DNA from: Selaginella moellendorffii
Taxonomy: Eukaryota; Plantae; Lycopodiophyta
DNA length: 64,000 nucleotides
Direction: 5' to 3'
Assembly (NCBI RefSeq): GCF_000143415.4
Contig: NW_003314362.1
Span: forward strand, 1-64,000
The notes beneath the pieces were generated by a model. The model saw only the letters and a list, made by a program, of their open reading frames with translations. It searched no databases and had not been told where the DNA came from. Below, in pieces: positions 3,425 through 64,000 of this stretch. Position numbers and translations under genes: made by a program. Within the stretch, counting starts at the first letter, position 1, and every line of letters begins with the position of its first letter.

Positions 3425-4155
3425 ATGTTCAGACATACTTATCAGACAGGATGCCTGTCCATTTTGTACAGCCTAAGGTGAGCTTCTTGTGTGGAGCGCT
3501 GACCTGTGGTTGGCCACCACTACAGGGGGAAGAATCCTCTCCAGTCGTGGAAGAGGCACGGTGAGCAGCACTTCGTGCATGGATTGACGGGAAATGAGTG
3601 GGGGTGTATAAGTGCGTATGGTGACGTTAAGAGCGTCCGGGACGAGGACATTGAGTCCTATGTTGTGGAGATTATGGGGGCGAACGTTCAGATGACAGGC
3701 ATCACTTGTCCACGGGACAATTCTGACTCTCTCGCCGTTCGGCTCCCTTTTTTCGTTATGATCGTCAAGAACATGAAGCGCTACTTCATGTTTGAAGTCG
3801 AGGTGATTGACGACAAAAACAAGCACCGCCGCTTCATTGCCTCCAATTTCCGGGTAAGAAATGCCCAGAACTGGAATGCGAAACATGTGTTGGCTTTTGT
3901 TGGCAGACAGCAACTCGCGTTGGTCAGTCCGTGTGCTTGATGCCTGTCACCTTGGACGTTGGGTGGAACCAGGTGCACTTCGACCTTCCTGGCTGCACCC
4001 GACTTGCCTACGGTACCAACTACAGGGAAACCGTCCGAGTGAGGGTGTTTGCCAACTGCAGAATCCGCTCGGTCTTTTTCTGCGACCGAATATATGCCGA
4101 GGAAACGCTGCCGCCCGAGTACAAGCTCTTCCTGCCAATTCAGGTAAAAGCCTAA
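3425..4155 (+). CDS. CFAP20: Divergent CFAP20/BUG22 (cilia- and flagella-associated protein 20) paralog, spliced
   Basis: Assembled MFRHTYQTGCLSILYSL..KNPLQ..DEDIESYVVEIMGANV..LPFFVMIVKNMKRYFMFEVEVIDDKNKHRRFIASNF..GWNQVHFDL..RLAYGTNYRETVRVRVFANCRIR..LPPEYKLFLPIQ is colinear with the CFAP20 consensus. Introns at 3478-3525 and 3854-3906; the status of 3561-3612 is ambiguous. Confidence 0.88.
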
Positions 4156-4286
4156 ATTCAGCTTCACCCTTCCTGGACTGGTACTTTGCAACAGCGAAAG
4201 CAGTGGATTGATCTACCCAGCCAACAGCAGACAGCTGCATACGTACCGCACTCCAAACGTTGTGTGGCTTAATGGCCTTGGCACCA

Positions 4287-7200
4287 TCAGTAGTCGATGT
4301 TCATGGACAGAGCAACTCCTTGCAGAACCCAATGTGACGTGTGTTCCTCAGTAGCCAAGTCCGCTTCAAAGATGAGTCCCACGCCCATAGCGTTTCGGCG
4401 TGCCTGTGTGACGTAAACAGGCGTTCTAAACGTGTTTTGAAGCTTGATCTTGCTGGCCTCCATGGGAATGATTTCCAATATTGGCAGCTCGACAACGAGC
4501 TGCTTTGGATCCTGGGGAGACAAGCAACGTTAACGCTTCTCTTCCACTGGCGTTGACTAGTACCTGTCGCTTGAGAAACGACTTTTCCAGATCCCAATTG
4601 GCGCCTTCCAGGTAGAGGCCAGTGACATAGCATCCATGCTTGGGCTTCTCCGGGACTTCATCAATGCTTTTGAACTTGGTCACCTGTGGAGCATCTTTAA
4701 ATGACAAGCAAGGAAACGGTATAAACAAAAACCTTGGTGTAGATAGTGGACTTGTCTAGTGGCCAACCGCGGTCCCTGCACGCAGTTTGAACAAGTGCAG
4801 CAATATATGTTTCGGGAATCTGGAGTCCCGACAGCCACATAACTTTCGGCTCCCCGTGCTCGGCCCAATTTTTGTATTGTTGATCTCGCCGCAACAACCA
4901 CACAATCCAAGCTGCAAGCATCTTCTCTGTCTGTGTTTTATTTTTTATTTAATTTCCAATGCATTAACATTAACCAACACATCAATAATACGGATTTCAT
5001 AAAACTGATCTATACCTGAGAGGTTAGCCTGCGCCACATGTTTGGAAGCTGCCCATTAAACAAAGCCGTTGAGAGCTCGTCTAAGTCTTTGCTCATCCCA
5101 ATCTCTCCAGCAAGTGCTTTCTTGAGCTTCCGAAGGCTCTCTGCCATGCTGGTAATAAGCCTGTTCCATCTCTCAATCTCTTGGAGAAGCACAACCTGGG
5201 GCAGGCATCCAAGAAGTTGACAAACAATAGCAGACGTGACTTACTTGCACGGGCGTAGGGACTCCAAATCTTTTCTTCAACACAGGAAGATCAAAAGGCA
5301 CAGGAAGCTTGGACAGTATATCTGACGCCACACGCTCAATGATGTCCTCTCTTCTCACCCCGCCTCCACTGTCCCCTCCACGAGGCTGCAAGTCCACAAG
5401 GTCTTTCCACAGGTTCTTGGTCGTATTGGTGTAGTAGCTAATATCGGCATTGGAGTGGAGACCAAACACCTCAGGCGTCTGGACTATTGGTAGGGAGTCA
5501 ATGTAATTGGTGTAGTTCTCTCTGGGCCCTGCAGGAGGAAGCATATAGCCAGAGCCATCGTCTTTGGTGTAGAAAAAAAAGGGATGGAACTTGTCAAACA
5601 AAAAGTCCCCCAGGTATTCATCCAGGTAAGTTTTCAAGATCCTCCGGTCGAACGAGTCCGAGACACGCCCTCCATACATGGCCTCACCAATGAGGTAGCG
5701 CAGCGTGCCCCACGGTATGGTGTCATCCCTGTTATCAAAAGCCTTCCGCAGGTACGTGGAGATGAGCAACAGGCTGTGCAGGAGGGAAGGCGAGGGGTTA
5801 AGCACGCGGAGCTAGCGCAAGAGCTCACCTGATGCGAAGGTCGGTCTCGTTAAAGTCGTAAGGGACATTCCATCCAAGCCTTCCGTACTTTCGCCGCTCT
5901 TGCACCACTGCATGGAAAAAGGCAACCACAAACACCTGCACATATACAGAAGTCAAGGTGGCGTGAGTGCCTCCGAGAGCAGAGACCCACCTGCGGACGG
6001 AAAGCAAAGTGTGGGCAGTCAGCAAGCATCTCTTCGGTGATTTTGGCGTACGATGATCTCAAGTTGAGCTTGAGCCCGTTGGGGGGCTCCGTGACAACTT
6101 TTAAGCTGCGCTGCAGGATGCCAAGAGGGAAAGTTGACGTCGGCTCCGTGGTGAGCCAAAGCCTGAATTCGGGATGAGGTTTGGTTATCTTCTCAAGGAT
6201 CTTTTCCAGCGTCTTTAGCCAGGACGGGAGCAGATGACAATTTTGAAGCATGACCCACAGGCCACGGCCGGAGCCCGACTCGAGTGTCTCTGCTGCCTTT
6301 GGCCCCATTCCCTGTCCCAGAGCCATATACTTGAGCTTTGCACCGGGCTTGAACCCCATCTCCTCTCCCAGGTTGAAAACGTCGAAAGCTGGGTCAGCAC
6401 CAGGGCTAAGAATGAAGACGATGGGCGTCAATGCCGAGCTTTGGCGGTGTATGCTCTTGTAGTCGAGCACCGGAGGCATGACATACTTCTCTCCCATCCG
6501 GTCTATCACGTACCGCTGCAGTTTAACAAGTGATCAAACACGTTGACCAGCAAACAATTAGCATTCAATTTTACCGTGACAGCGACCGTGATCCTGTCGA
6601 TGCGGAAGCAGCGTAAGACGCAGAGCTGCTCGAAAAGATTGAGCTTGTCGTTGAATTGTCCTGGCATGGATGCCATCTCTGGCTGATCTTCCTCGTACCA
6701 TGACTTCCATTCCGGTCCATTCTCCGAGAAGTGGTCTACTAGAGCTTTGAACTGCGGGCCCAGTTCCATCATCTCCACGACATCTTGCCACCCCGTGTCC
6801 GGAAACCAGTCGTGTGGCTTTGGCAGGGGCGATTTCTCCAGAGACAGGTTGCCCTTGAGGAAGAACTGCAGCTGAGCATGATCCATTCCTGTCTCCCCGT
6901 CGATGATCCTGGTTGTTAGCTGGAAGGAGAGCATCAACTTGTGCTTCTCAAACAGCCCCGTGCACGTATAATTGTACACGTCGTATGTGACAGCGTCGAT
7001 GATGCTGCGTAGCCGCGCATCTAGTGTGGGTTCCCGCTTGCTCGTGGCCAGTGATATCTCAAACACTTGCAGAAAGGATGCCAGCGAGTACTCGTACATG
7101 TTGTTGATAGCGGAGAGGCCGGACATGACAAAAAAGAGGATGGCACCCCTCTTGGCAGCCGGGGAGTACCTCAGGCGCAGCTGCACACGAACCAGAAAAA

Positions 7201-10200
7201 CTCACACGGTTCATGGACACAACAACTTACTTGATCGATCTCTACGGACGTATCCCGGGCGAGCTTCAGCTTGTGAGAAATCTCAGATGCTTTAAGCTTC
7301 GTGTTTTCCAAAGTTGTCAGCAGTTCCTCGTTATCCAGAATGTTACCCGTGGCATTGCTTAGTTCCTGACAGACCGGAGTGGAAACGCAGTCATTGCAGG
7401 TTTACGTAGGAACGAACACCAGGCATACCCGCAGAAGGGTGTCTTCGAGCTGTTTCAACAGCGCCTTGTTCTCGCTAGTGTCCCTCACAAGCTCTTCTCT
7501 TTGTTCCTCAAGGTCGGGTCTTTCATGTCTTACCTGTTGAAAAGCAAAAAAGAGCGTCAAACTCAGAAAGCTGGCCAGCTTACCGTGGCATTTAGCAGCT
7601 GCGACTGCAGCCCTTGTTCAGTGACGCCATAGTTGATGATCATAGTCTTTCCGGATATTTCTGGGCCATAGTGAGGATTCGGAAGCTTGCTTATTAAATA
7701 CAGCCTAAAGTTGTCGTCCTGTTTGCCGCTGAACAGTCAAAAACAAATACAGTCCTGGAAGATTGTATGCTCACCCATTCGACGTCTTTATCCCCGAGCT
7801 TGACACTTTTCCTTGCACCACCAGCAGATGTGAATGTTCTTTCTAGAACCGGATCTATGACAGGGTCTATATACTCGTCCACATTTTCAAACATAAATGG
7901 AAACCCATACTGGATTGCCATCTCAAGCTGCTTCACGAAGTCAGAGTCATTGAAGGTTTTCACCCGGCCCTCAAGCTGCTTGCCCTCCTTCTTTTTTATC
8001 CAGGATATGGCCTGCTCAGCAAAAGAAGCGTTGGGTTGGAGTTATCACAGAACTATACCTGCATTTGCGGGTCAATGCAAAGAGGAAAGCGGGACGCCCT
8101 TGTTGTTAGTATGCCGTTCTGAATGGAGAGCTCATTCGACGGCAATCCCTCGCTGTTCCACTTGCTAATCTCAACTTCACTCGTTAAAATGTTCTCTAGG
8201 AAGAAAGGGTCTGTGCAGGGCAACTCTTTGGATCGGATGTCTGCAAGCCAGATATTTTGAATGAGCTCCGTCCTGTAGTCCATTGTAAATGCCCCGCAAT
8301 AGCTGGGAGAAAACGATAGTAGTAAGTCAACATAACCGTAGTAGCATAGTCATAGTTTAGCCAACCTCAGGAAGCTGGAGGTGACGAGGCAGTCTCCAAT
8401 CAGCTTGACTCGAGCAACAGCAAGGTCGCCCAGTTCTCGAGACCATCTCTCGTGCTCCGAGCCCAAGCCAACGATAAGACGTTCAGCAGCGCTCAAACGC
8501 TTCTCCATGAGGTCTGCTTTCTCCTTAAGTGCTTGCTGCTCTGCTGTGTTGTCCTCAAATTGCTTCTGAAGAGCTCCCAGCTGCTCAGAAAGCTGCCTCA
8601 CCTGCGCTGGAGTAAAGGGGTGCTTAAGAAACAAAGAGTTGCCTTTTTAAAAACAAACCTCCTCCTGTATTTTCTCAAGCTCCTTCTGTGCATTCTTTAG
8701 ATTTTTTTCGGCATTGGCAACCGCCAGCCTCTTGGGCTGCACAACTTTTGCTACTCCGTAGTAGTTTACCATGGCAACCACCCAGCGGAGAAGCCCAGCT
8801 CCGGCTGTGGAGATGGTACTTAGTTCGTCCAAATTCAGTTTTGGATCCTTAAAGTACTCCTTGAGAGCTCGCATCTGAAAAACACCTCTTAGCTGTGCAT
8901 GCTTGTTAGGAGACGGGGAGCGACAGAGCAACCTGCTTCTCGGTAATGGAATCCTTGTCAAACTCCATTAACGTGGCCAAAAATCTGTTGTCAGCCATCA
9001 TTGCCTTGGCACCTTTCCAAGACACGTCTTTGATGCCCCGCAAGATAACCACGCACTCGCACACCTGTATTTTGGCCCTAGTAATCTCACATCACACTAG
9101 ACAAACTGTTACCTTTTGCACTAAGATGTGAGGCTTGGCAAAAGATCTAATCTCGGTAATCTCTTCCTTTTTAAGACTGTTAAGAGCTTCAGCAGCTGCT
9201 TCCAATGCTGGTAGTGCTTCCGCAAGAGCTACCTCTGCCTCTGCTTTCTCTCTTGTTATAACCTCACTTTGCTTGGATAAATCCACGGCTTTATCATTTG
9301 CAATGCCTTGTTTTGTCTGAACTTCAGCGGTATTCTTGCTGCAGCCTTCAGTGCATAAGGCAAGCATCCAGTGCATAAGGCAAGTTTACCTGATAACTTC
9401 GAGAAGCTCGTTACATTCCTTTGTCTTGGCATCAACAACAATTTTCGCGTCCGCAAGAGTAATCTAGGAAATAGCAGATTATAGGAAAAAGTTTGTAATA
9501 GCTAGAGGTAGTGTACCTGCATTTCTGAAACCTCAACCTTCGCCTGAATCAGTTTTTGGAGACCACCATTCAGTCTTGCAGCCATATCACTGTTATTAAC
9601 CCTGGTCTTGACGAGTGACGTCCGATAGTTTTCAATAAAGTCGAGAAAGTTTTTGGGTGTGACATAGTTGTAGCGACGCATTTTCTGCTCAAAACCTGCA
9701 CTCACCTTGCACACAGATTGGTGAACCATCACCATATGCTCTAGGATATGGGGGCGCAGGTTTTCCGGGAGGTCTAACTCCGATAGAAAGACCGTAGCCA
9801 CAGAGTGAAGTGCTTCTTCAGGCCATGGTGTTAGCCAGTTTATGACACAATTGTTGACCTGAGAAATTATAAAACAAATGTGTTGGCAAAGAGAAGAAAA
9901 ATAAAAAGACGGTATACCATGCCAGGAAAGTTTCGGCAGCGGGTTCTCAAAAGTTCACCAACTGGAGACATTGCCAGAGTGACATGCAAGTTACTGCGAC
10001 AACGATGAATGAAATAGGCCCAGCAGTTTTCTTTGGTGTCGACGATTCCAGCAGCGGTGACAGCATCTCGAATCTGCATTGGAAAAGGTGAGGACAGTGT
10101 GACCGGGGTACAGCATCGAACTTACCTGGCCGATCATTCCATCCTTCTCGTCTTCCGCAAAGAGTGCGGGTACCATTCCAGAAGTTAGCATGTTGTTTAC

Positions 10201-47204: not shown

Positions 47205-49112
47205 ATGGAGCAGCTGGAAGGTGGAGCGATGGTGGATGACGGCCTCGCGCAGCTTGTTGAGCAGCTTAACCGGCATTGCCTTGCCCCCGACGGATCTTAT
47301 GTCGCCAAAGCTGCGTACTACGATCTCGTCCAGGTACTCTGCTGCTTAGCTAGGTCGATGAGATTGAGCGCCAATCCAAGTCTTCGTTAGGCGCGTGAGG
47401 AGATGGGGCGGGAGAGGCTTCGTTTCCTAGAAGTGATGGTCGGTGGTTCGTTTCATTCTTTTCGGAGTGCTCTTAAACCACTGGCGCTGTTGTTATAGGC
47501 GGCTTACAGCGAAGCAGTGACACTTGTGGAAGAATTCCAGCAGGCTATCTCAGTGGCAAATGCAGGTGGAATCAGGGATGTTCAGGCATTGTTCTTGCAG
47601 CTCGGACTACGCTCTACTCCACAGGTAGTGAAGAGCTTTTCAAGTTTAGTTTCTAGACTTTTTTCTTTAGCTGTTCTTTCTCCCGTCAAGGTGTATGAAG
47701 CCCTGGAGGAGCGTCTGGCTGTGGCCGAAGCTTGCCAGCGCTTGCGGCTCCCTTCCGTAACGAAAGATGGCGACATACTAGACGAGGAAGCGGAGAAGTG
47801 CAGCATTGTGTCGAAAAGCTCGCTGGACAGCAGCACCACCAGCATCAGCATGAGCTCCAGCAACACCAGCACTCCCAATCCCAGCCACGATGTTAATGAA
47901 GTTGGAGTTTCCGGTGTTGTCAACCGCTTCCTAGGAATAACTCCTGCGTGGCTTCGTCAGACACATCTATCAAAGGCCCCTTTTGCTGAGGTTAGTGCCA
48001 TCTCAATGGCCTTTTTCTCACGAGATTGTCTTGCCAGGACAGCACAGGCTACCTTATGCTGCTGATTCCGGAAATTGAATCACGGCTAAAAGCCAAGTGT
48101 GAGAAAATCAGCTCTTCCTTTCAAGAGAATGGTCAGTACTTTGAGTCGTGGCTTTCAGTATTCAGCTCTAACTTACTTTTGTCGTAGATGGCTTTGGTTC
48201 TCATGGTACAAAGAGCTATAGACTTGCTGAAAGGTCAGTAAAGATATTCGAGGTCATTTCCTATCAGGTGTTTCTTCCAGGGTTAAAGCAGCTGTAGAAT
48301 CCAACGAGAGCGAAGAGGCGGCTTTACTTAGCGATCTCTACTCTGCGGACCGAAAGTTTTCAGAATACTACAATGTACGTTTCTTTAAATTTTTGTCCTT
48401 GAAGAGCGAAGCTTGATCAGCCATATCCCAGGTTCTTGAGCAGATATTGGGAGTACTGATAAAGCTGGTCAAGGACTATAAGCTGCAGCACCAGCATGAA
48501 TATGTAAGTGTTCGAAACAATCGCGGGCATATAGATCGATTACTTGTCAAACTGGCAGGACGAGATGAGAAAAGCTTGGCTGTGTAAGCGTTGCGAGACA
48601 ATGAATGCGAAGCTGCGGTATACGTTTCCTATATTACTAATGCATGATTCCGTTATCTTTTCCTTTTTCTAGTGTGCTGGAACACCTTGTTCTCAGAGAC
48701 ACGTATACGGAAGAATCAATCGCAGCGTTGCACAAGATCAGGTGTGCGCTTTTAAATATTTACTGGCGTGGCGGGCTGCTCACTTCATGGTTGGCTGCAG
48801 GAATTATTTGCTGGAAGCAGACGACGAAGCCACTGCCGGATATAATAGAGCCGTAAGTATCGGGACCAATCTCACGGAAGCTCGTCGCTTACCAGTCGTG
48901 GTATTCGCAGGTGACGAGGTTGCGCGAGTACCAAGGCGTGGATCAGTACTTTGATGACATTGCCAGGCGGTATCACGACGTTGTTAAGGTGAGAGCAAAA
49001 TCGTGGGCAGCCTTTGATATGTTGGGTGGTGACAAACTTACAGAAACTGGAGGGAATTCAGTGGACAATAAGACAGGTGGAGATGGACCTCAATAATGGA
49101 CACGAGCATTAG
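47205..49112 (+). CDS. AUG4: AUGMIN subunit 4, multi-exon
   Basis: QLNRHCLAPDGS..YYDLVQAREEMGRERLRFLEVM..GGIRDVQ..VYEALEERLAVAEACQRLRLP..NRFLGITPAWL..DLYSADRKFSEYYN..WLCKRCETMNAKL..LREYQGVD..QWTIRQVEMDL. Confidence 0.92.
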
Positions 49113-49578
49113 TTTGGCTGGAACTGGGGAACAGCTCAGTAGATACTTTCGAGGCTCGAAAAGGCAGGCACAGGGAATGGTGAAAGTGGTGGTGGTGCCA
49201 TGCGTGGAACTCGCTGGTGTTAGTTTGGTTTCTAGTGGCAGGGAAGACGAGCAAGCTACAGCAACGGAAACAGACTTGTTGGTTGGATGTATCCACCGTT
49301 TTGCGCTCTGCTAGATTCAATGGACTTGGTCAGTGCGGCACGAATTGAATAGGTGGGGGATCTCCGAAACGCTTGCGTCCAATGGCAAAAGAAATCTCCT
49401 TGAAACGAGGATGTGGCGCAAGCAAGTACGTCTCCGAAATTAGCAGGCTCCGCCATTTGTGGAAGGCGGCCAGGCTTGACTGGCCATAGGCGGTGGCCGC
49501 CGTCGCCAACTCCCGCGCGTTACCGGTTGGACCCCGTCCCGCCAAATGCCGACCACCACACTTTGGAACAAGGCTGCC

Positions 49579-49585
49579 TATAAAA
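49579..49585 (+). promoter_or_regulatory. TATA box of cysteine protease gene
   Basis: CCTATAAAACC lies ~80 bp upstream of the ATG at 49662. Confidence 0.6.
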
Positions 49586-49661
49586 CCACATCTCCCTTGG
49601 TTGGAAACTTGGATCCTTGGCTTACAAAGGGAGGGAGGAGAAGAATCGAGCGAGCAGAAGA

Positions 49662-50933
<1,272 letters not shown>

Positions 50934-51134
50934 GAGAAAAAGCTACGACACACGGCCAATCGTCAAGTTGTTTGTACAGATCGATCATTCGTTTCATTCG
51001 TCCGGGTCGTATTCCAGGATTCATTTCGCCAGAAAACGTACTCTTCAATCTCTCTTTCTTTCGTTTGTAAGCATATCTATATATCGCTAGTGTAAGAAAA
51101 AAAAAAAGACAAACAAAACTTCAACTTCACTGGA

Positions 51135-52219
51135 TCAGCAAGAAAGAATTTGGAGCCCGTCATCCTGGACAATTTTGTCAATGAGACAGCTCGCGAAGGT
51201 ATCGGCATTTCTCAGCTCGAGGTGTGGTAGTGGTGTCTTAAACTCGTAGTCGGATTCCATCTTCGAGTAAGTCCCGCAAATCGCAACATCCTCCCTCCAC
51301 AGCCCGTCGTATCTACACCTGGAGGTTGTGTAATAGAACACACCCTTGCCATGCTTCTTGTCGTTGGAAAAACACCCCTCATACACATCGCCATTCACTG
51401 CAAGATCAAACCAAATCAAGTTTTTTCCAAGAACACTTGCCTAAGCTTTTGCTCACCCACTGTCAGTGTTCCCGTGCCTTCGCGCTTGTCATCCCGCCAC
51501 TGGCCAACGTAGACGTGATATCTCCCACTTTGGGGGCAATAGTACGTCTGTCGGCCATAGCCACTGCGAACGCCGCGCTCAAAGTCGCCTTCGTACACTT
51601 CGCCATAAGCGCAGTGAAGGTAGCCAGGCCCCTGCCAGTACATCCATCGTCTTGTGAGCTATCCTCACTTGTCGTCCATCCCAGTAGCAGCGAAAGAGAA
51701 CTTACGTGCAAGTTCCCCGATTTCCAGTAGCCTTTGTAGACAACTCTGTACTTTCCATCTTCCCGGATGTAGAAAGTACCATATCCTTCTCTTCGATCTT
51801 TCTTCCAGTCGCCCTCGTACCGATTGCCCGTGCAATAGCTTTGGATGCCACTCCCTGCACAAAAGCCACCATGGAAATGGTTGAGCTCGAGTTTGAGAGG
51901 AGCTCGATCGAGTACCTTCTTTCTTGTTGAGCCTCCAGTTCCCACGGTAGAGGTCCTGTGTGATCCAGTAGACATCGTGGTGGAATCCATTCTTGTTGGC
52001 CCGCAAGTCATTGATCCTCCACGCGCTCTTCTTCTGCTTTTCCAGTTGCTGCTCGCGCTCCTTGAATTTCCTGCGGTACCAGTGCTCGGGCTTCTTCCTG
52101 GCGACCGGCTGAGGCTGGTGCTGCAAGCGTGCCAGTGCCAGAGGAACCTCCTTGGTCGTAAACATCACGGAGCGCCTCTCCTTGATATACGCGATCTTCG
52201 CTCCCCTCCTCCGATCCAT
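51135..52219 (-). CDS. MORN-repeat protein (MORN3-like), spliced
   Basis: Repeated YxGxWxxxKxxGxG motifs (YRGNWRLNKKEG, YEGDWKKDRREGYG, YEGDFERGVRSGYG, YEGCFSNDKKHGKG). The C-terminal YDGLWREDVAICG..PLPHLEL resembles MORN3. Confidence 0.8.
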
Positions 52220-52538
52220 CCTTGCTGCTCCTCCTCCCTCCTCCTTTCTTTCTTAAAGCTTTGAATTTGCTGTGGCGCGCGGCGCGGGTATATACACACG
52301 AATATTCACTCGTTCTGTTGTAAGTAGTAGTGCGTGGCTTGCTCCACAAAAAATAAGTTCAAAGCCCTGTTTTGATCGTATGGAGTCAGTCGTGACAAAA
52401 AAAAAAAAAAAAAAAAAACACCAACAAGCTCTCTCCTCTATTTTCAACCAGGTCACTCTCACCTTTCGCTAAAAAGTCTCGCTGGAACTCAGAGTCTATG
52501 TACGAGTTAGAAGTCAGCAACACGGACCCTCGTTCTCT

Positions 52539-54801
52539 CTATGTCAATCCCCGAGACAGGGGAAACATTCCAAAGCCGACACCTCGCTTCTCGATCCTGG
52601 AAGCAGCAGTCCAGAAGAAAAGTGGTGAGACAAGAGAGCAAGCAAATCGAAGAGAGCTAGAGAACTTACGAGGGAGCGAGCTTGCCCAGGCACCTGATCT
52701 CATTCCCGGTGGCCAAGTCCACCACCACACCGTCAATGTCGATTGTGTAGGAAGTGTTTGGAGTGGAAGGCAGGCCGCGCTTGACGAGAACCTGGAGATC
52801 CTGCTGGTGTAACTCTCGGCCATTGATCACCACTCCGGTTTTGCCACCCGCGCAGTTTACTGGCATCGCCGGGTGCTTGAACTCCTCAATGCATGGCTGC
52901 AAAAAGCAAAAAGTACCCGGTCAAAAAACTATAGCAGGGTCACATGATCTTACAGGAACTATCCCGATGCACGGCCCTCCCATCACTCCCCAGAACCCAG
53001 CACGGTAGTCATACCTGTTGATCATCATCGTCAAGAACAGGAAAAAGAAAGAAAAAGATAGCAAAAGTGAGCTTACCAATAGTTTCCTGGATGAATCGGC
53101 CCAGCTAGTTCCTCGGCCTTTCTCACGAGCTCGTCCGGTATGGTTGCGCCGTTGATTGTCACAACCGAGTAATGCTGCTGCTGAAAATGGAGCTTGCTGA
53201 TCTCCTGGATGCTCTTGAGAAGCAGCGCCTTAATTCCGCCACCCCCGGCTTTGGGCTTTGGGCTCGTCTCCGACGAAGACTTTGTGGAGGACCTCGTGCT
53301 CTTGTTGTCAGCCACCTTGAGGAACTGCGATGGCGATTCGTAGCCGAAGAGCTCGTGGAGACAGGGCGCCAGCGGCACGGTGGAGCTGGATCCCGCGGAG
53401 ATGGTCCTGGCGTGGCTTGAGGGAGTGGAGGCGGAGGCGCCGTGATGGAACTCGGGAGCCGACTCGTAGCCTTTGCTGTTGCTGGTGATGTTGTCCGTGA
53501 TGCGCTTTTGGAGATGGAAATGAGCTGCGTGATACGAAGCTGGAGCCGAGCCTGGAACTGGCGAGCTCGAGGAGCTCATCATCATCGCCACCATGTCCAT
53601 CTTCCTGTTGTGATCGATCCCTGACGCGTTCTTCATCGTCGAGCCGCCGCTGGAACGATCGAAAGAGTCCACGGGAACAATGCCTGGCTGCTGCTTCCTC
53701 TCGTGTTCGACGTCGGCGAGTGCGAACTTGGAGATGGAGTGGCAAGCTCCACACCGGAGCTTCTGGACGCTCGTCTTGGAGGGTGGCAGCGAGCGAGGGA
53801 CCTCGAGCAGCTTGTCACAGTGTTGGCACACGACGTAAGGCGAGTTGAGTGGAGGATACGCTCTCTTCTTCTTGTTCCCTGCGGGGCCGGGGGTGACGGC
53901 AACCATAGCCAGATGATGATCTTCTTCATGTCCTCCCAACGCATCGGACGAGCTGCTACTGTTCCTGCTCCTCCTCGCCGCCGCGTTGCAGCGCAGATCT
54001 TCTCCAGTCTCAGTGGCAGCAGTGGAAGTGGGAGCCTCCACTGGATGAAGATCATGAACGCACGACTTCCGGCGAAGATCGTCCGACTGAGCACTCGAAT
54101 CGAGCTCTTCCAGTGTGGAGTGATAGTCACTCATGGCATCCAAGTCGCGAGCTTGCCTGGGAAACGTGAACTCGTCCAGCTCCTGCCTCGTCATTCTTCC
54201 TCCATTGCCGGCGCTGCTGCCATTGCTGCTCGCTAGCCTTGTGGTGGCGTTCTTGCCGTCCTCCGGAGCTTGGACTTGTGCCGGGAAAGCTTCCCTGGCC
54301 AGCTTCCTCATGTCCTGGAGGAGCAAAGAATTGTCCTCGTCTATGGCTGCCGGTGCTGGTGCTGGTGCCGCGGCCGAGGACATCCTCCCGCTACCACTGC
54401 CAATCCCATTCCTGGGCGTGTACAAAGGCGAGGCCGAGGCGTCGAGTGGATTCCCGGGAAGAGGGCTGGGATTTGGAATGGCGATGGGCTGCCGCTCCCT
54501 GTGCTTGTAGAGCGGCGGCGGAGGAGGAGGAGGAGAAGGGGTGGAAGCTTTGGCAGCAGCGGCGGCCGCGGCGGCGTTGTTTTGATTTTGATCGGCTGCG
54601 ACTGCGAGCGAAGATCTGGCATGCTTGGCTGCCACACAGAGAAAGAATGACACCACAAAATCAGTGCCAAGCAAGCGAAGAACACGCGAGGAGCTCACCG
54701 ATCAAGACCGTGAGGCAGTTCCCACACTGGTAGATTGTGACCCCGGCCGTGGGCTCGACAAGCAGCTCCTTGCATCCTGGGCAGTGGACGATCCTCGTCA
54801 T
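52539..54801 (-). CDS. EDR4-like / DUF3133 zinc-ribbon protein with XLG-like C-terminal domain
   Basis: N-terminal CPGC..YQCGNC, internal PYVVCQHCDKLL..KLRCGAC, and C-terminal KAEELAGPIHPGNYWYDYRAGFWGVMGGPC..GVVINGRELHQQDL..LGKLAP. Confidence 0.85.
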
Positions 54802-55594
54802 GATCTTGGGCTAGGATCCCTTCTTTCTTCCCAAATGCGCCCTCACTCTCTCTATACCTCGTTGCTCGCTCTCGCCCGCGGCTAAGTCACGCCCATGGAT
54901 GGAAGAGCTAGGAGCTAGGAGCTTTGCTGGGCTCCCTCCATCTCCCCCTCCCTGTAGTGGTGGCTGACCTAATTGCGCTGGAAGGATACAGCTGCAAAGG
55001 ACCCACAATCAATGCCGCGAAAACGAAAACGCTGCGCGTTCCCTGCCTCTTCGGGTGCTCGATTCCTGGAGCGAGAACACAGGGCCAGCTCGCTTAGGTA
55101 TATAACTGTTTTGTTTCTAGCTCCTCCACCCCGGGCGATGATCCATTCCATCCAACAACAAAGCGCGAGCAGACAATGCGGGCGAAGAACAAGGGGGAAA
55201 AAAAATTGGAGAGGGATCTCTTTCTTTACAGGAGAATCCAGAAAAAAAAAGGATCGATCGAGGAGGAACTGGGCATTGGATTGGATCTTCGCTCTTACAA
55301 AAAAAAGAAATTAATCAGAGGGATGCCGCTCGCTCGCTCACTCCCCTGGCGCGGTCAGAGAAGTTATAATTCTTGTCCACAAGCGAAACAAAGAGAGGAA
55401 AAAAAAAAGGTGGACGGACGCGTGCTTCTCCTCTGACTATAAGACGAAGACGACGCGACGATGGGAGATCGATCTGGCGTGAACCATGCATTGACACGCT
55501 TTACGATGCGTGTTGGATAAGGCCACTCGGAGACATTCCATTTATTAGGGTTTGAGTTCTCGGAGAAGAAGAGGAAGAACTTGCAAGGAGCAGC

Positions 55595-56204
55595 ATGGCG
55601 GGAGAAAGTGGCAATGCCGTGAGTTGTTCTTGTTCTTGGGTTTTTCTCTCGCAGCTCTGATCGATCCATGCCATGGTTTTGCAGCAAAAGAGCGATGTTT
55701 ACATCGTCCACATGGCGAAATCGGGCGAGGAGAGCCCCAACGCTTTGGAAGCCAAGCAGCTAGACGTGCTAGCCTCGGTTCTTGGAAGGTAAGCGTGAGA
55801 TTTTGTGTTCTTGGTCACTGATTTCCTTGAGCTTTCCAGCCCCGACGCGGCCAAGGACGCGATCCTCTACCACTACAAGCACTCGATGCACGGGTTCTCC
55901 GCCAAGCTCACGGCGGATCAAGCCAAGGCGATCTCCGGTAAGAAGAAGAAAACCCTCTGCTCTCTCTTTTTGAGGTTTTCGTGCTCTAGCTATGGATGAA
56001 AGAATAGAAAAAAAGAAAAGAGGCTGTAGCTATGGATGAAAGAGTAGAAAAAAAAAAATGGCTTGTTTGTTTCTTGTGTAAGTACCTAAGATTTTGTTTG
56101 GGCGTGTGATACCAGAGCTTCCAGGAGTCCTCCAGGTGCATGTAAGCCAAACATATCAACTCCATGGCGGCGGGGCAACACCAACTGTGCAAGAGGCTTC
56201 TTGA
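55595..56204 (+). CDS. Stand-alone subtilase propeptide-like inhibitor (peptidase inhibitor I9), 4 exons; largely missed by the ORF track
   Basis: Spliced product MAGESGNA|QKSDVYIVHMAKSGEESPNALEAKQLDVLASVLGS|PDAAKDAILYHYKHSMHGFSAKLTADQAKAIS|ELPGVLQVHVSQTYQLHGGGATPTVQEAS*. Confidence 0.88.
55987..56058. repeat. Tandem duplication in I9 intron
   Basis: TAGCTATGGATGAAAGA(A/G)TAGAAAAAAA occurs twice, 40 bp apart. Confidence 0.85.
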
Positions 56205-56809
56205 GAATTGTTTACATTTTCCCAGGAAAGAAGTATCATGTAAATCTATACTACTAGTAATAATAAGGTGGTATCAAGGTTTTGATTTTAAAGAATGGCA
56301 GATGGTTTTGGTTTTGTCCAGGCGACTCGGTCAACATGGATGATGATGGTCAATTCATGAATCCATCAAAAAATTTCTAAAGGTATGGGGCCCTAACCAA
56401 ACGCGGGCTTTGGTGAGCGAGCGTGTTGTTTTTTATTTCTAGAGATTTCTAGGGGAAACATGACGTGGGTCTTACTCAAGCACAAGCATCGACAGTGTCA
56501 CATGCTGATTTACCATTCCTTTCGGAAGGTGGTAATAGTAGATTCCTTGGTTTCTTATCTGCTGGGGAATCTTACAACATTGGGATGTAGTCGACCGAAA
56601 GAGGAAGGGCTGTGATTGAGGGGAGGAGTTTTGGCCCGCAAGGTAAGTTGGAAAGAGATCAAACCAGAGCTATACTTGTCTTGAGGTTTTAACAGCTACT
56701 ATGGCACTGGATCTCATCATACCTCCGAAGTTTGTGGTCAATTCTCATGAATGGCTGATTCTTTGGGATGTCTTGTAGAGACTAAAAGAAGTTCCGGCGC
56801 GAATCACGG

Positions 56810-57602
56810 TTGGGTGCTTATAAAGATAGACCATTTGCTTCCATGGCTGTTGACAAGATCGACGAGGAGGAAGCATTTAGCCGCGGAAAAGAGAATGTGG
56901 ATGAGGATTGGGATGATCAGCCCAAGGTAACAGTGCGTGATAAAGTTCCACCCGTACTTTTGTCTTGTCACCATTTCCGTACGAAAAACTTCCGTGCACA
57001 GGTAACAATGCATTTCAGATTGGGGGAAGTGTGTTGCGAGGCTAATGCAAAGACTATCAAAGCCAAACTGGAAGCCATCCGAGGTACGTACACCAAAAAC
57101 ATTATGTAAAATTCATAGAATAGATTCAATCAGGCATAGACGAGGTTCGCGTGGATCACAAGCTCAAGAAGGTGACGATCAAGAGCTCAAAACTGGCGGC
57201 AAAGGGAGTAATAGACATTATCTCCAAGTTTCGTGGAGTACAGTTGGAGCCATGGAAAGAACAAATGGATGCTCCTTCCAAAAGAATTCATATTGTTGAA
57301 GTGATTAAACGTGAAGATCCACCGATGAGGGCGAGAATGGCTGTTCATCACCCAAACCAAGGCCAGATCTTCGTCTACACAACCAGCGACTGCTACGAAA
57401 CGTGGTACGAATCAAAAGACGCCAGATTCTAAGAGTAGATTCTGTCGTCAAATATATTAATAATCCAAACGGCCTTAGAAATAATTTACTTATAAATCCT
57501 AGCGGAAGAATAGAGTTTGAAGAACAAGATTGCGCTACCAACAGACTTGTGGAGCTCCTTGGCGGTCGGCTTTGGCAGTCAATGAAAGTAAACAAATTTT
57601 GA
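56810..57602 (+). pseudogene. HMA (heavy-metal-associated)-like domain gene with unknown C-terminal domain; probable frameshift near 57420; 5' end unclear
   Basis: VTMHFRLGEVCCEANAKTIKAKLEAIR|GIDEVRVDHKLKKVTI follows the HMA beta-alpha-beta pattern, but CxxC is changed to CCEAN. Confidence 0.5.
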
Positions 57603-57714
57603 GGACTTGCACTGACTATATTGACTTTTTATTGACATGAATTGACCGACTGCTTATCAAGCACAAAACAATTTATCTATACCATCTAGATGTAAAAAAT
57701 CGCTAAATAAACTC

Positions 57715-58752
57715 TCAGGCTAAACGCCTATGTTTAGTCTTGCTTTTGGACTTGCTCTTGGACTTGGGCTTCTTCTTACAAGGGTCCTCCACATCCTTGT
57801 TACGCTCCCGCATTTCCGCAAATAGCCGTTCACGCTCCTCACACCATGCCCGCTGCTCCTCCTCGGTTAGCGTGAGCTCGTAGCCTAAGTCATTCCAGAC
57901 AGGCTCCGGTGCCTCGTTCGTCACACCATCAAGCAATCGCTGCAAGTGATAGAGATCAATCACCACATCCGCTGGCGGCAGCTCCATCTGGTAACCCTCC
58001 AACCCAATTCTATCACACGCCACCCCTCCCAGCCCAACACCCGAAACTTGAGCTCCGTCCCTCTCGAGTAGTAGCACAGTCGACGGGTCCAGCGCCTTGG
58101 ATCCAAAACTCACAGCCTTCTTCTCAACTGTGCCATCGCCCTGCTTGCAGCTGCGGATCGCCACCAGCTGCTCGGTTTTCATCTCGTACTGCTTCACTCC
58201 CAGCACAATGCGAACGGCTGGGTTGGCGGCCAGTAACTCATTGCAAGCCTCCAGCAATTCGGGCAGGGTCCGAGCCACTCCAAACACGATGAAGCCAACC
58301 GAGTCGTCGTCCGAGTTGAATTCCTCTCCCTCTCCCTCGTCTGGATCAGCCAATGCGATATGGAAAATAGCTCCCACTGCCCTGCTGCCGGATGGATTCA
58401 GCTTGATTGGTGTGCCAAGATGGAGCATGGTGTCGTCGGTGAGGTAGTGTTCGCCCAGGCGGTCGAGGGTTTCAGCGAGGATGGGCGTCACCATGTCTTC
58501 TACGTAGCAGACTTTATCCTCCAGGCGGAAGCTCATTCCTGCTTTCCAGCTGATACCAGTGTCTGAAACTGAGAGCTTTGCCTTTTGAGCCTCACAGATC
58601 CCCTCAAATGATTTGAGCGTGCTGATCTGCCCCTTGTAAACAAACTCTTTGGGGTTGCAGTCGAGAGCGTCCCCCTGAGCAGCGGTGAGTAAAGCTTTCG
58701 CCCTCAGACGAGCCATCAGATATGTATTACCCGTCTGCGTCCTCCGCGCCAT
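57715..58752 (-). CDS. Intronless ORF with CRN/Uma2-type PD-(D/E)xK restriction-endonuclease-like fold and basic C-terminal NLS
   Basis: ADPD...FIVFGVARTLPELLEACNELLAANPAVRIVLGVKQY..LVAI..AVSFGSKAL..VVIDLYHLQRLL follows the pattern I recall for CRN-associated REase domains (PxIVVEVAxSxxxxL..IxIK..ISFG..IDLxxLQ). It ends KKKPKSKSKSKSKTKHRRLA. Confidence 0.5.
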   Translation of the reverse strand: MARRTQTGNTYLMARLRAKALLTAAQGDALDCNPKEFVYKGQISTLKSFEGICEAQKAKLSVSDTGISWKAGMSFRLEDKVCYVEDMVTPILAETLDRLGEHYLTDDTMLHLGTPIKLNPSGSRAVGAIFHIALADPDEGEGEEFNSDDDSVGFIVFGVARTLPELLEACNELLAANPAVRIVLGVKQYEMKTEQLVAIRSCKQGDGTVEKKAVSFGSKALDPSTVLLLERDGAQVSGVGLGGVACDRIGLEGYQMELPPADVVIDLYHLQRLLDGVTNEAPEPVWNDLGYELTLTEEEQRAWCEERERLFAEMRERNKDVEDPCKKKPKSKSKSKSKTKHRRLA

Positions 58753-58971
58753 CGCTCTTGCTAACGACAATAAGGTGAACCCTAAACTGTGACTCTTGTT
58801 TTCTTCAATATATAATTATAAAATATATACAGAAATACTCTTTGCTTCTTGTAGACTCTTCCAAGTCGAGGTCCTTTTACATGGTTTCTTTCTTCTTTCT
58901 CAAGCTTGCTCTACATCACTCATGGAGAACCATGTTAAGTTTGTCGTTGCTACAAACATATATATATACAA

Positions 58972-61662
58972 GAACCTCGATGGACGGATTTCAGAGAGGG
59001 AGGTAAAAGAGGTATGCATTTTTACAAACCTTTTGAAACTTCAAAAAGTTTCCAGATTTTTTTTCTTTCTCCTCTTTTTCTTTTTGTGAGAGGAAGAAGC
59101 ATATCCAGAAGAGAATTGTTGAACACTTGCAATGGTGGCAGGTGATAATGCTAAGTGCGTCCGCCAACCGGCTGTCGAAACTCAAGGAGCAGGCCGAGGA
59201 ATATGCCGCGGTCATGATGGAAGAACTGGATCCGGAAAACCTGGCTACATCGAGGTGGGAAATGAAGATTTAGACGTGGGAACAGAAAAGAAAGCAAAGA
59301 AGAAGCTTCGGATGGGAATCTAAAGTGTTCCAATCCGTCACAAGTATCTCAACGTTTTTTCTGACACCACCTTTTTGGTGCTTTTGGTTTGCATTGCATG
59401 GTTTGCAGCTATGGCAACTAGAGACGCTGCTGATGCGAGGACCACACTCCAAGGATCACAGCAGCCAGCAGGCGAGCCAGATCATCACGAGCACGAAAGC
59501 ACCAGGCATCTCACGCCGATTGCAGAGATTCCTGCATTCTTTGGGTGATAACTGGAGGCGAATGTGGGTGGTGTCGCTGTGGATTATGGCTATGGCCGGG
59601 CTCTTCAGCTGGAAGTTTGTGCGGTACAAGAACAAGGCGGCATTTCAAGTCATGGGCTACTGCGTTTGCACCGCCAAGGGTGCTGCCGAGACGCTCAAGC
59701 TCAACATGGCTTTGATCCTATTCCCGGTTTGCAGGAAGACGATCACCTGGCTTCCATCGACTTGGCTCGGGAATCTTGTTCCTTTTGACGATGATATCAA
59801 CTTCCACAAGGTGAGATCACCTTCGAGAAAGTTGTATACCAACTTGGCCGTCAACGTTTTTGTATACTTTGCAGATCATTGCTCTAGGGATTGTTGTGGG
59901 GGTTCTCATCCACGCAGGAACTCACCTGGCTTGCGATTTCGTTAGGATTGTCAACTATACTGACCAGGAGTTTGTAAGGATGATCGGGAAAGGATTCCAC
60001 AACAAGAAGCCAACTTATGTGGACATTCTTCGATCGGTGGAAGGGGTGACAGGAACTATCATGGTAGTATTGATGGTCATCGCCTTCACTCTCGTGTCGA
60101 GATGGTTCCGGAGAGATCTCATCAAACTTCCCTGGCCTCTCAAGAACATGACCGGTTTCAATGCGTTTTGGTACTCGCATCACCTCCTCATCGTCGTTTA
60201 CATCCTCCTCCTCGTCCATTCCTTCTTCCTCTTCCTTACTTACAAGTGGCACGAAAAAAATGTAAGACAAAACTCCTTTTTATCTTTTTCAAAGCAGAAT
60301 TTTGAATTGCAGACATGGATGTATTTGGCTGTGCCCCTACTGCTGTATGCTGGAGCAAGTGTATCGAGCTTGCAGGGCCAATTACACTTGTACAAATCAT
60401 CAAGGTGAGCAAGGCTTTTGGAAAGATTTGGGCTTTTTCTTATGATAGTCGCGATATACCCCGGAAATGTGCTAGCTTTACACATGAGCAAGCCTCCTGG
60501 ATTCACTTACCACAGTGGAATGTATCTCTTCCTCAAATGCGCTGAAATCTCGCCCTTCGAATGGTATGATGCAAATTATGGTTCTTGCCTTTGAAGCTTA
60601 TAATGTTTTCCACAGGCATCCCTTCTCCATAACCTCCGCTCCAGGAGAGGATTTCCTGAGCGTTCACATCAGAACTTTGGGCGACTGGACTCAAAAGATG
60701 AGGAAGCTCTTCTCTGAGGTACAATTTGTTTCCAATCATATGGTTTGCCAACGTTCATTGACGGCCCGTATGTCCTTCGCAAGACTATAGAAAGTACGAT
60801 GTTCTTCTCCTCATTGGACTGGGAATCGGTGCCACTCCATTTATCAGCATTCTCAAAGACATACTCAACCAGCGCACAGCTGCAAGTAAGTGCGCTCAAG
60901 CCTCTTCAAACGATCTCTCGTGAGTAACAAAAGCTAGGCTCGATCGATTGTGCTTGCAGGATTTATCATTCTCGATTGATATGAGCAAGTCATTTGGATC
61001 TCCCAACGGAGCACTAGCGCTGGAGAGCCCCAGGAGACACTCGCTCGAAAGCCCACGTAGACGCAAGCGGAAGTGTCCCACAAACGCGTATTTCTACTGG
61101 GTGACGCGGGAGCAGGGATCGTTCGAGTGGTTTAAAGGTGTCATGAATGACGTTGCGGAAATCGATCACAAGGTAAAACCTCTCTATGTTCCTCCAAAGT
61201 TTAGATTATCAATCTTTTGCTTATCAGGCCGTGATTGAGATGCACAACTATCTCACGAGTGTTTATGAGGAGGGTGACGCGAGGTCTGCTCTCATTGCAA
61301 TGGTTCAAGCTTTGCACCATGCAAAAAACGGAGTTGACATTGTTTCTGGAACTCGGGTATGAAATTTTGGGTATTTTCTTATGGTATTTCTGAGTAATAA
61401 TATCAATCGTATATAAACTTCCAGGTTCGCACACATTTTGCTCGTCCAAACTGGAGCAAAGTTTTCTCAAACTTTTCGACCACGCATGCTAACTCCACAA
61501 TTGGTCAGTCAAATTGGTTTTCACTTTCCATATAACTTTTTGATATTCGCAGTTGTTTTTTACTGCGGGCCGGCGCTGCTAGCAAAAGAGCTACGCACAC
61601 TTTCACAGGAATACACACAGCAATCAAGCTGCAGGTTTGAGTTTCACAAAGAAAACTTCTAG
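58972..61662 (+). pseudogene. RBOH: Respiratory burst oxidase homolog (RBOH), 5'-truncated and frameshifted
   Basis: Begins at an EF-hand exon (NLDGRISEREVKE). [62 protein letters not shown] and FEFHKENF* are present. Frameshifts at ~60355-60390 and ~60770, and a missing exon/acceptor after KLFSE. Confidence 0.88.
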
Positions 61663-61966
61663 ACGAGATCGAAGCAAAAAATTTTAGGCGAGAGAGATTT
61701 TATGTACATAATTGTCTAACCATTTGCGGCACAGGCGAAAGCAAATCGCCTGCTCCAAAGAGTTTGTGATCGATTGGAACCAGAGCATACTCCAAAACGA
61801 ACTAAATCTCTGGCGATCGATCGATCCCAATGTCAAATTCAACTCTAGACTTTCGCGGCGAGAAGATGCTCGCAAAGTCTGACTAAACCACCGCGATCTT
61901 TAAGAACCAATCCCCCAGATTGTCAGGAGATCGATCGCTTTTTCCGCAAATCTCTCCAACTCTACA

Positions 61967-63682
61967 ATGCCCAATTCTATCCCGGTTCTTCTCGCCACGA
62001 TCACGCTGTTCTTCGCGGCCGGGAGTCCCCAATCCACGAGCAGCGCCTGCGGCAAGCCCTGCGCGAGCGTCAACGACTGCCCGGCCATGATGATCTGCGA
62101 TCCCTACGGCCAATGCAACAGCAATCCCTCCAACACCCACATGTCCGTTTCCCCAGTCGCCCCGGGCTGCAATCCTGCCCAATCATTCGTCTACACCGCT
62201 CCTACCATCGACGAGGATCACTGCGCCACAAACACCACACACTATCTCTACAACTGCTCGCCCCCAGTGTCGCGCCGCCGCCCCAACCCCGCCATTCTCT
62301 ACTACATCGAGCTCGATAATGGCTCGAGGTGCGAGGAGAAGAAATACCAGCCGTCCGATCTCGTGGCATCCATGGCCACCGGATGGTATAATAACTATCA
62401 ACGGCCAGGGGTAGAAACGTAACCATCACGGCCCTCAACGGCCGTACCGTGACGGCCATGGTTGTGGACGCGTGCTCGGCCATGGCTGGCTGTACGGCCG
62501 CCACTAGCTTCTATCCATCGTGCTCTCCAAAGAGCCTGGGCGCCACGCAGGGCGTTTGGGAGGCCCTGGGATACAAAATCTCGGAAGGAATCATCGATAT
62601 AACATGGGAGTTTGAGCGCGCGGGAAAGAGGCCGCGTTTGAAACGGACGGTTGTGATTGCGTCCTCTGTTGCGGCAGCGACGGCTGGGATTGTTCTAGGG
62701 TTTGTTCTTGGTTCCGGGCTAGGGATTGCGAGAAGGAGAGCGAGCTCGGGGGAATGCTGCCGGAGCGATTCAGGCATCGGAAGCTCTGTGCCGCGACGGG
62801 GGATTTCGGCGCGGGATCGAAGCTGGGACAGGGCGGATCGGGGTCTGTCTTCAAGGGTGTTCTTCCGGATGGGAGATTGGTGGCTGTCAAGCGGATCGGG
62901 GGCTCTGGCAAGCAATTCCGGGCGGAGGTGATGGCCGTGGGGAGGATTCACCACTTGAATCTCGTGAGGCTGCTGTGGTTTTGCATCAAGAGCCCGCTCC
63001 ACTTCCTGGTGTACGAATTCATGCCAAACGGGTCGCTGGATTCGTGGATTTTTGGCAAGGGGAGGTACTTGGATTGGAGCAGCAGGGTCTCGATCGCCAT
63101 GGATGTCGCTCGCGGGCTGGCCTATCTCCACGATTCATGCCGCGAGAAGATCTTCCATCTGGATATCAAGCCTCAGAACATTCTTCTGGATGGGAAGATG
63201 CGTGCCAAGATTTCCGATTTTGGATTCGCCAAGATTGTCGACAAGGACAAGAGCCAAACGATCACGGGGCTACATGGCGCCCGAGTGGCTCCATTCCACG
63301 ATCACAGACAAGACAGACGTCTACAGCTACGGTGTGGTTTTGATCGAGCTGGTTTCGACACAGCAATCTCCAGAATTTTCTGGCATTCCACCTCCACAAA
63401 ACTGGGATCTCTCCTCAGCCTTGGATCGATCAGGCTGTTGTGGGAATCGGCTTGGATCTCAACATCCTCCACTCCAGCCAAGTAATTCGATCCAGAACTG
63501 GTTTCTTCCTCACTGCCCTCGATTGCCTGATCTCGTGTACACAAGAGGAACCTTGGTTGAGACCGTCCATGGGACTGGTGGTAAAGCAGCTGGAATCTCT
63601 TGTGGAGCTAGAGACCACCACCTTGCCTAGATTCTCTGTTAACTTGCCAACCTCTCCCGATGATACAAAAAAGCAAACATAA
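61967..63682 (+). pseudogene. Kissper-Kiwellin ectodomain / TM / non-RD Ser-Thr receptor-like kinase fusion, intronless, disrupted by frameshifts and an internal inversion
   Basis: In order: signal peptide; CGKPCASVNDC..IC..GQCNSNP (kissper); YNCSPPV..LVASMATGWYN..ITALNGRTVTAMVVDAC..GC..VWEALG..DITW (kiwellin DPBB); TM VVIASSVAAATAGIVLGFVLG; kinase LGQGGSGSVFKG, VAVK, HLDIKPQNILLD, DFG, RGYMAPEW, DVYSYG, RPSMG. Confidence 0.85.
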
Positions 63683-64000
63683 GGGAAAAAGTAAATTATT
63701 AATTGCAAAAAAGAATATTATAAAAATATACTTCTCTAACAAATTGTTAATAGCTTATCTAGAATTAGCATTTGCCCAGCATATGCTGTCCTGTTAACAA
63801 ATATTGTTTTGAATGTTAAATCTAATAAACAAATAAAGTGAACTTGAAAAGCTTGTATTATAACTATATATCAAGAATTTCTTTCAGTGCTACAAACAAT
63901 GCATGGAGCATTTAGTATTAAACCTCCTTATAAACTGTGTTGATGGTGAAAGTAGGACTTAAAGGGAATAATTGTCCTTGGAGTGACATGTTCTGTACTT

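Follow-up and report, generated by a model that had tools for sequence, protein, structure and literature searches.

The closest conceptual precedent for kiwellin receptor kinases is the PR5K family of PR5-like receptor kinases, in which the extracellular part of a single-pass receptor kinase is likewise a pathogenesis-related protein that is normally secreted. The two differ in what is displayed outside the cell: the PR5K ectodomain is a thaumatin domain (PF00314), whereas that of the Selaginella proteins consists of a kissper module and a kiwellin double-psi beta-barrel (PF24300), and the copy in the DNA analyzed here is in all likelihood a pseudogene. Populus PR5-like receptor kinases and Salix thaumatin-domain kinases are also among the kinase matches (~44% identity, E ~1e-76). 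On the side of the ectodomain, maize KWL1 and KWL1-b and the kiwifruit kiwellin have the fold that is predicted for the intact Selaginella ectodomain, at an identity of only ~33%, but they are free secreted proteins of ~190 aa, whereas the Selaginella domain is tethered to a kinase via a transmembrane (TM) helix. The nearest kinase domains (~45-50% identity) belong to SD2-5-type G-type lectin S-domain receptor-like kinases (RLKs) and to At5g20050-like kinases; unlike the SD2-5 RLKs, the Selaginella proteins are devoid of B-lectin, S-locus and PAN domains and have a kiwellin as their ectodomain. To our knowledge, all kiwellins described so far are free secreted defence proteins, one of which neutralises a fungal effector.

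The window, by which we mean the whole stretch of 64,000 nucleotides that was analyzed, is Selaginella moellendorffii GL377666.1:1-64000 (assembly GCA_000143415.2), with 100% identity over 56482-64000 at the same coordinates. Three-frame translation and Pfam searches recovered a signal peptide, a kissper module, a kiwellin domain, a putative TM helix and a non-RD kinase, in that order, on the plus strand of 61967-63682. The KWL1 profile (PF24300) is matched in two pieces, one at 61967-62419 in frame 1 (E 5e-4, 20.1 bits, profile 63-132) and one at 62398-62600 in frame 3 (E 2e-10, 41 bits, profile 135-200); against the curated cut-off of 27 bits, the C-terminal half lies above and the N-terminal half, taken alone, below. 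Pkinase is matched at 62754-63270 in frame 2 (E 1.4e-28, profile 4-156) and at ~63244-63360 in frame 3 (profile 155-194), and translation places a final kinase piece at 63534-63682 in frame 1. All KWL1 and Pkinase pieces are colinear, so that the kiwellin-TM-kinase unit of the original prediction is real, and translation and Pfam found no second copy of either domain elsewhere within the 64-kb window. The hydrophobic N-terminus is evident directly from the translation. Between the ectodomain and the kinase, a hydrophobic stretch read by eye occupies 62650-62712, its end and the basic residues that follow being cut by a 25-bp deletion. The kinase had been called non-RD, and its catalytic loop at 63156-63179 indeed reads HLDIKPQN, with the HxD but without the Arg before the catalytic Asp. 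The same motif is found in the proteins P0001, P0028 and P0055 and in the partner ORF of the intact locus L001 (model P0108). The features of the locus are collected in Table 1.

Table 1. Features of the duplicated block and of the kiwellin receptor kinase copy it contains (positions are those of the window; L001 and L003 are the loci with intact copies).
Feature	Position	Strand	Evidence
5'-truncated Rboh (NADPH oxidase) copy, left part of block	58968..61762	+	colinear with L001 821-3781 and L003 reverse complement
Junction where head-to-head partner kiwellin kinase is missing	61759..61762	.	4-bp AGAG microhomology
Remaining ~205 bp of shared upstream (promoter/5' UTR) region	61763..61966	+	aligns to L001 5788-6000; 9-bp deletion at 61780
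First ORF (151 aa): signal peptide, kissper Cys module, N-terminal kiwellin half-barrel	61967..62422	+	ORF list; Pfam KWL1 63-132
Gain of 3 bp, in frame	62388	+	alignment to L001
Loss of 10 bp, frameshift; removes conserved barrel Cys	62410	+	alignment; stretch present in both intact copies
C-terminal half of kiwellin barrel, frame 3	62411..62616	+	Pfam KWL1, 41 bits
Putative TM helix remnant	62650..62712	+	translation; alignment to intact copy
Loss of 25 bp, frameshift, at TM helix end	62710	+	alignment to L001
Juxtamembrane and kinase subdomains I-VII, frame 2, with HLDIKPQN and DFG	62736..63266	+	Pfam; translation
Loss of 17 bp, frameshift; part of activation loop, just before GYMAPEW	63267	+	alignment to L001
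Kinase subdomain VIII-IX piece (GYMAPEW ... IELV), frame 3	63268..63355	+	Pfam Pkinase 155-194
178-bp inverted segment (kinase subdomains IX-X), with 25-bp loss at left junction	63356..63533	-	alignment to L001 and L003, matched in reverse
Kinase subdomain XI and C-terminal tail, frame 1	63534..63682	+	translation; alignment
Loss of 3 bp, in frame	63630	+	alignment to L001
Loss of 10 bp, near C-terminus	63656	+	alignment to L001

An intact paralog had been implied, and it exists twice. A full HMMER scan with the C-terminal kiwellin half plus TM helix as query led to P0001, a protein of 549 aa that is 92% identical to the query and contains KWL1 and a complete kinase. Among genomic sequences, L001 (GL377634.1) holds at 6001-7770 one uninterrupted, intronless ORF of 589 codons, which begins with the MPNSIPVLL signal peptide as in the window copy, and L003 (GL377589.1) holds at 7914-9695 a second intact single ORF, also intronless, of 593 codons. 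Both carry KWL1 (75.9 bits in the intact paralog) and a complete Pkinase domain, with a hydrophobic stretch of ~25 residues and then basic residues between ectodomain and kinase. The junctions are the same in the two copies, which establishes the intronless kiwellin-TM-kinase gene as a genuine unit rather than a chance join. The two genes, here termed B-type, differ at pS 0.041 and pN 0.011 (pN/pS 0.27), and both intact copies are to all appearances under purifying selection. In L001 as in L003, the B-type gene stands head-to-head with a more divergent A-type kiwellin kinase (ectodomain ~37-39% identical), and a full-length Rboh gene adjoins the A/B pair (L001 1-3681; L003 12011-15790). GL377575.1 holds a third A/B pair, which is older, and at least seven distinct S. 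moellendorffii proteins combine KWL1 with Pkinase, which RefSeq names after SD2-5, At5g20050 or lectin kinases. A search with the ectodomain of the intact paralog alone returned only itself and was uninformative, the word index being too coarse for divergent ectodomains. The A-type partner on GL377589.1 (L003 10001-11824, P0228, 607 aa) has a non-hydrophobic N-terminus, unlike the signal peptide of the L001 copy, which suggests a lesion or a wrong start at its 5' end.

The fold of the ectodomain was examined in the intact paralog. In phmmer, it matches kiwellin 4PMK over residues 26-217 (E 4e-28), that is, over its whole length including the kissper module. Its AlphaFold model (pLDDT 73.8) superposes on maize KWL1 in the Cmu1 complex (6FPG) with a TM-score of 0.88 and an rmsd of 1.9 A, and on 4PMK with a TM-score of 0.91. 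Across the solved kiwellins 6FPG, 6TI2, 4PMK and 4X9U, target-normalised TM-scores of 0.8-0.9 and rmsd values of 1.6-2.6 A were obtained, with the exception of one full-length 4X9U chain that aligns poorly. The intact ectodomain thus models as a kissper module plus a double-psi beta-barrel of the kiwellin type.

The window copy itself is heavily damaged. Lesions were scored by alignment to the intact paralogs in L001 and L003, both of which are free of them; the window copy alone carries every lesion in Table 1. The frame changes that had been placed at ~62410, ~62745 and ~63265 are real and correspond to the deletions of 10, 25 and 17 bp, but the earlier inventory of damage stopped there and overlooked the inversion, the 10-bp C-terminal deletion, the 3-bp gain and loss, and the absent partner gene. 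The 10-bp deletion at 62410 brings in a premature stop at 62420-62422, and the copy as a whole is spread over four frames and one inverted segment. Translation that starts at the ATG runs for only 151 residues, so that no receptor can be made from it. In reverse orientation, the inverted segment aligns with L001 7629-7464 and, at 98.9%, with the L003 copy, and it is because of this inversion that a minus-strand ORF at 63302-63544 reads a peptide that runs forward in P0001. The kinase domain is incomplete, with the activation loop partly deleted and subdomains IX-X inverted; Pkinase coverage is limited to profile positions 4-156 and 155-194, compared with 3-260 of 263 in the L001 protein. Substitutions private to the window copy include C62S in the kiwellin and G348W at the conserved Gly of the LxGxC motif, and C62S together with the loss of the nearly invariant barrel Cys (C150, alignment A1) breaks the conserved cysteine framework. 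As the frameshift splits the barrel, this copy cannot adopt a kiwellin fold. Private substitutions comprise 13 nonsynonymous and 9 synonymous changes, not clearly more relaxed than in the intact lineages, so either the decay is recent or the counts are too small to tell.

RefSeq annotates XP_024519379.1 (P0002, 305 aa) at window 62449-63485. To bridge two frames, this model relies on an invented intron, which takes out the TM helix; its end is read out of frame, and its Pkinase match covers profile positions 4-156 only, without activation segment or C-lobe. It is an artefact of the pseudogene. The 2011 S. moellendorffii models (EFJ accessions) split the receptor genes into partial pieces of 134-216 aa that contain either the kiwellin or the kinase (P0268-P0270, P0272, P0220-P0223, P0225-P0227). 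This may explain why kiwellin kinases went unrecognised and were counted as plain kiwellins in family surveys.

The damaged gene is part of a larger block. Homology to the intact loci is restricted to 58968-63766, the right end falling shortly past the kinase stop codon. At its left, the Rboh copy is 96-97% identical to L001 821-3781 and to reverse-complemented L003, and its homology starts ~930 bp inside the full Rboh genes. Several of its indels have lengths not divisible by 3, and its public model has no NADPH_Ox domain, whereas the L001 and L003 models have one. In L001, the A-type partner gene (581 aa) lies within 2,002 bp (3782-5783) to which nothing in the window corresponds. The window, L001 and L003 copies are about equally diverged from one another (1.3-2%), with the window branch somewhat longer. 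Outside the block, the flank at 47716-58796 is colinear at 98.4% with scaffold GL377669.1 (L005), whose counterpart stops exactly at 58796, leaving 171 bp to the start of the duplicated block; past this breakpoint the scaffold is unrelated to the window, and no Rboh or kinase was found on it within 9.7 kb. Because colinearity with GL377669.1 is lost here, the allelic haplotype must lack the block at this position. The block is therefore a partial duplicate that, at this position, only one of the haplotypes carries; it may be a paralogous locus in its own right or a large structural variant confined to one haplotype, ~10 kb on each side having been examined. That the window could be an allele of the L001 locus was considered and rejected, as L001 pairs with L003 (7.8 kb, 97.4%) and the window flank pairs with GL377669.1. 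The 5.7 kb downstream contain no repeats of at least 40 bp and no ORFs of at least 100 aa, and thus no LTRs, TIRs or ORFs that would explain the copying of the block.

Independent public data were available over part of the damage. Logan contigs of four public runs were aligned to 61400-64000, and a contig was taken to bridge a lesion under a rule of 31 bases. X8 has contigs that reach across the 17-bp deletion, across the inversion at either junction and across the 10-bp C-terminal deletion, all without a single difference from the window. In X4, which comes from another study, short exact contigs extend 29-30 bases past each inversion junction and so narrowly miss the bridging rule, and the uninverted, intact-type form is also present. 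X1, a DNA sample with ~204 Mb of contigs, has the intact-type form only, at every lesion covered; the window copy appears to vary in presence among plants. Contigs of X4 and X9 in the intact-type form skip 49 nt at 61505-61553, with GT..AG ends if the cut is shifted by one base, which is within the tolerance of the tool; read in this way, the skip would be a short 3' intron of the Rboh gene. This spliced intron makes X4 probably RNA and suggests the same for X9. The window copy may therefore be transcribed, a point that contigs cannot prove. When the most window-specific 381 bases were searched against the indexed runs, no run exceeded a word share of 0.38, which by estimate is roughly what the intact copies have too, and the search could not show expression.

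The original prediction had allowed for either a pseudogene or assembly errors, and only the former has held up for the lesions with contig coverage. That the gene is intact in the plant, and that its frame changes and inversion arose in assembly, is very improbable. The reading draws what strength it has from the 10-bp (62410) and 25-bp (62710) deletions, which have no window-form contig among those listed and rest on the assembly alone, and from the 5' half, most of whose window-specific words are held by no indexed run. The lesions are, however, multi-base deletions and an inversion rather than homopolymer slips, and the same copy has a truncated neighbour and lacks its partner gene. The 17-bp deletion at 63267 and both inversion junctions recur exactly in independent contigs and hence are not assembly errors; the lesions covered by contigs, the C-terminal 10-bp deletion among them, are real. 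An even weaker case can be made for a separate kiwellin gene and a kinase fragment joined by chance, in which event the architecture would not be a real gene type. The window locus has indeed been rearranged, yet the two near-identical intact single ORFs with the same junctions have already refuted this idea, and both the further S. moellendorffii proteins with KWL1 and Pkinase and the separate origin of the same design in angiosperms (see below) argue against it, so that its probability is close to nil.

Somewhat more room, though still little, is left for a locus that continues to make something useful, whether a secreted half-kiwellin of 151 aa or a soluble kinase-like protein such as XP_024519379.1. 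The first ORF keeps its ATG, signal peptide and kissper cysteines, the upstream region is retained, the exact short contigs of X4 over the inversion junctions are consistent with transcription, and RefSeq does annotate a protein here. Against this, the 151-aa product would have only half a double-psi barrel and would be two conserved cysteines short, the RefSeq model has the defects described above, and the block is absent from both the allelic haplotype and the DNA sample X1. We consider it unlikely. The sequence at 61967-63682 is, with high probability, a pseudogene of a B-type kiwellin-ectodomain non-RD RLK, the decayed copy from a partly duplicated block. In the history we propose, a block of Rboh, an A-type kiwellin kinase on the minus strand and a B-type gene head-to-head with it on the plus strand would have been partly copied to a second locus, the copied segment beginning inside Rboh. 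A single clean deletion of 2 kb would later have taken the A-type partner out of the copy, and the B-type gene would then have gained the three frameshifting deletions, the inversion with its accompanying deletion, the C-terminal deletion and the damaging substitutions.

The same domain order is not confined to Selaginella. It is found, with an SD2-5-like non-RD kinase, in Carnegiea gigantea KAJ8448161.1 (P0003), in Cuscuta campestris (P0255) and in further transcripts, and the ectodomains of the angiosperm fusion proteins (P0003, P0255, P0055, P0232, P0256 and P0261) are 67-93% alike. These ectodomains are 62-69% identical to angiosperm soluble kiwellins, compared with 38% to the Selaginella ones, and the kinases are 57-62% identical to angiosperm SD2-5-like kinases, compared with 42-45% to those of Selaginella. 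Both halves are thus much closer to angiosperm proteins than to Selaginella, which makes this a second, independent fusion. A search of the accessible literature found no description of a kiwellin receptor kinase, and the word 'kinase' is absent from the text and the available supplements of a kiwellin family survey (PMC9813671). As it is visible in automatic domain annotation, the architecture is undescribed rather than unseen. A family with kiwellins wired to non-RD kinases would add a new class of ectodomain to the plant receptor kinases, and such proteins would offer a direct handle on what kiwellins recognise.

The question of receptor function belongs to the intact copies on GL377634.1 and GL377589.1 and not to the window copy. 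Taken together, the kiwellin fold, the kinase motifs, the non-RD loop, purifying selection and the kinship with SD2-5 and PR5K kinases fit a ligand-sensing defence receptor. In intact members, the kissper-kiwellin ectodomain would most likely recognise a pathogen protein or a glycan outside the cell; this would switch on the non-RD SD2-5-like kinase, probably in concert with the A-type partner of the pair, and the activated kinase would trigger defence signalling. The 'integrated decoy' or effector-binding role that was proposed for the ectodomain is an analogy with maize KWL1-Cmu1 and not a result, and a wall or glycan ligand is a live alternative to an effector. Related double-psi beta-barrel folds, such as expansins, barwin and cerato-platanins, bind glycans. 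It is conceivable, if on balance doubtful, that the intact A/B pairs beside Rboh are cell-surface immune receptors that use the kiwellin as bait and feed the oxidative burst, that the window copy is a trace of birth and death in such a family, and that the design re-evolved in cactus and dodder. Like immune receptor families, this one varies in presence and absence and shows decay; if the bait-receptor reading is true, the hemizygous, decaying copy in the window would record the kind of turnover that immune receptor loci typically undergo.

A minor observation concerns the right edge of the duplicated block. The AT-rich sequence at 63749-64000 has a contig depth in X1 that is 5- to 10-fold above that of the neighbouring gene, and is probably a dispersed repeat.
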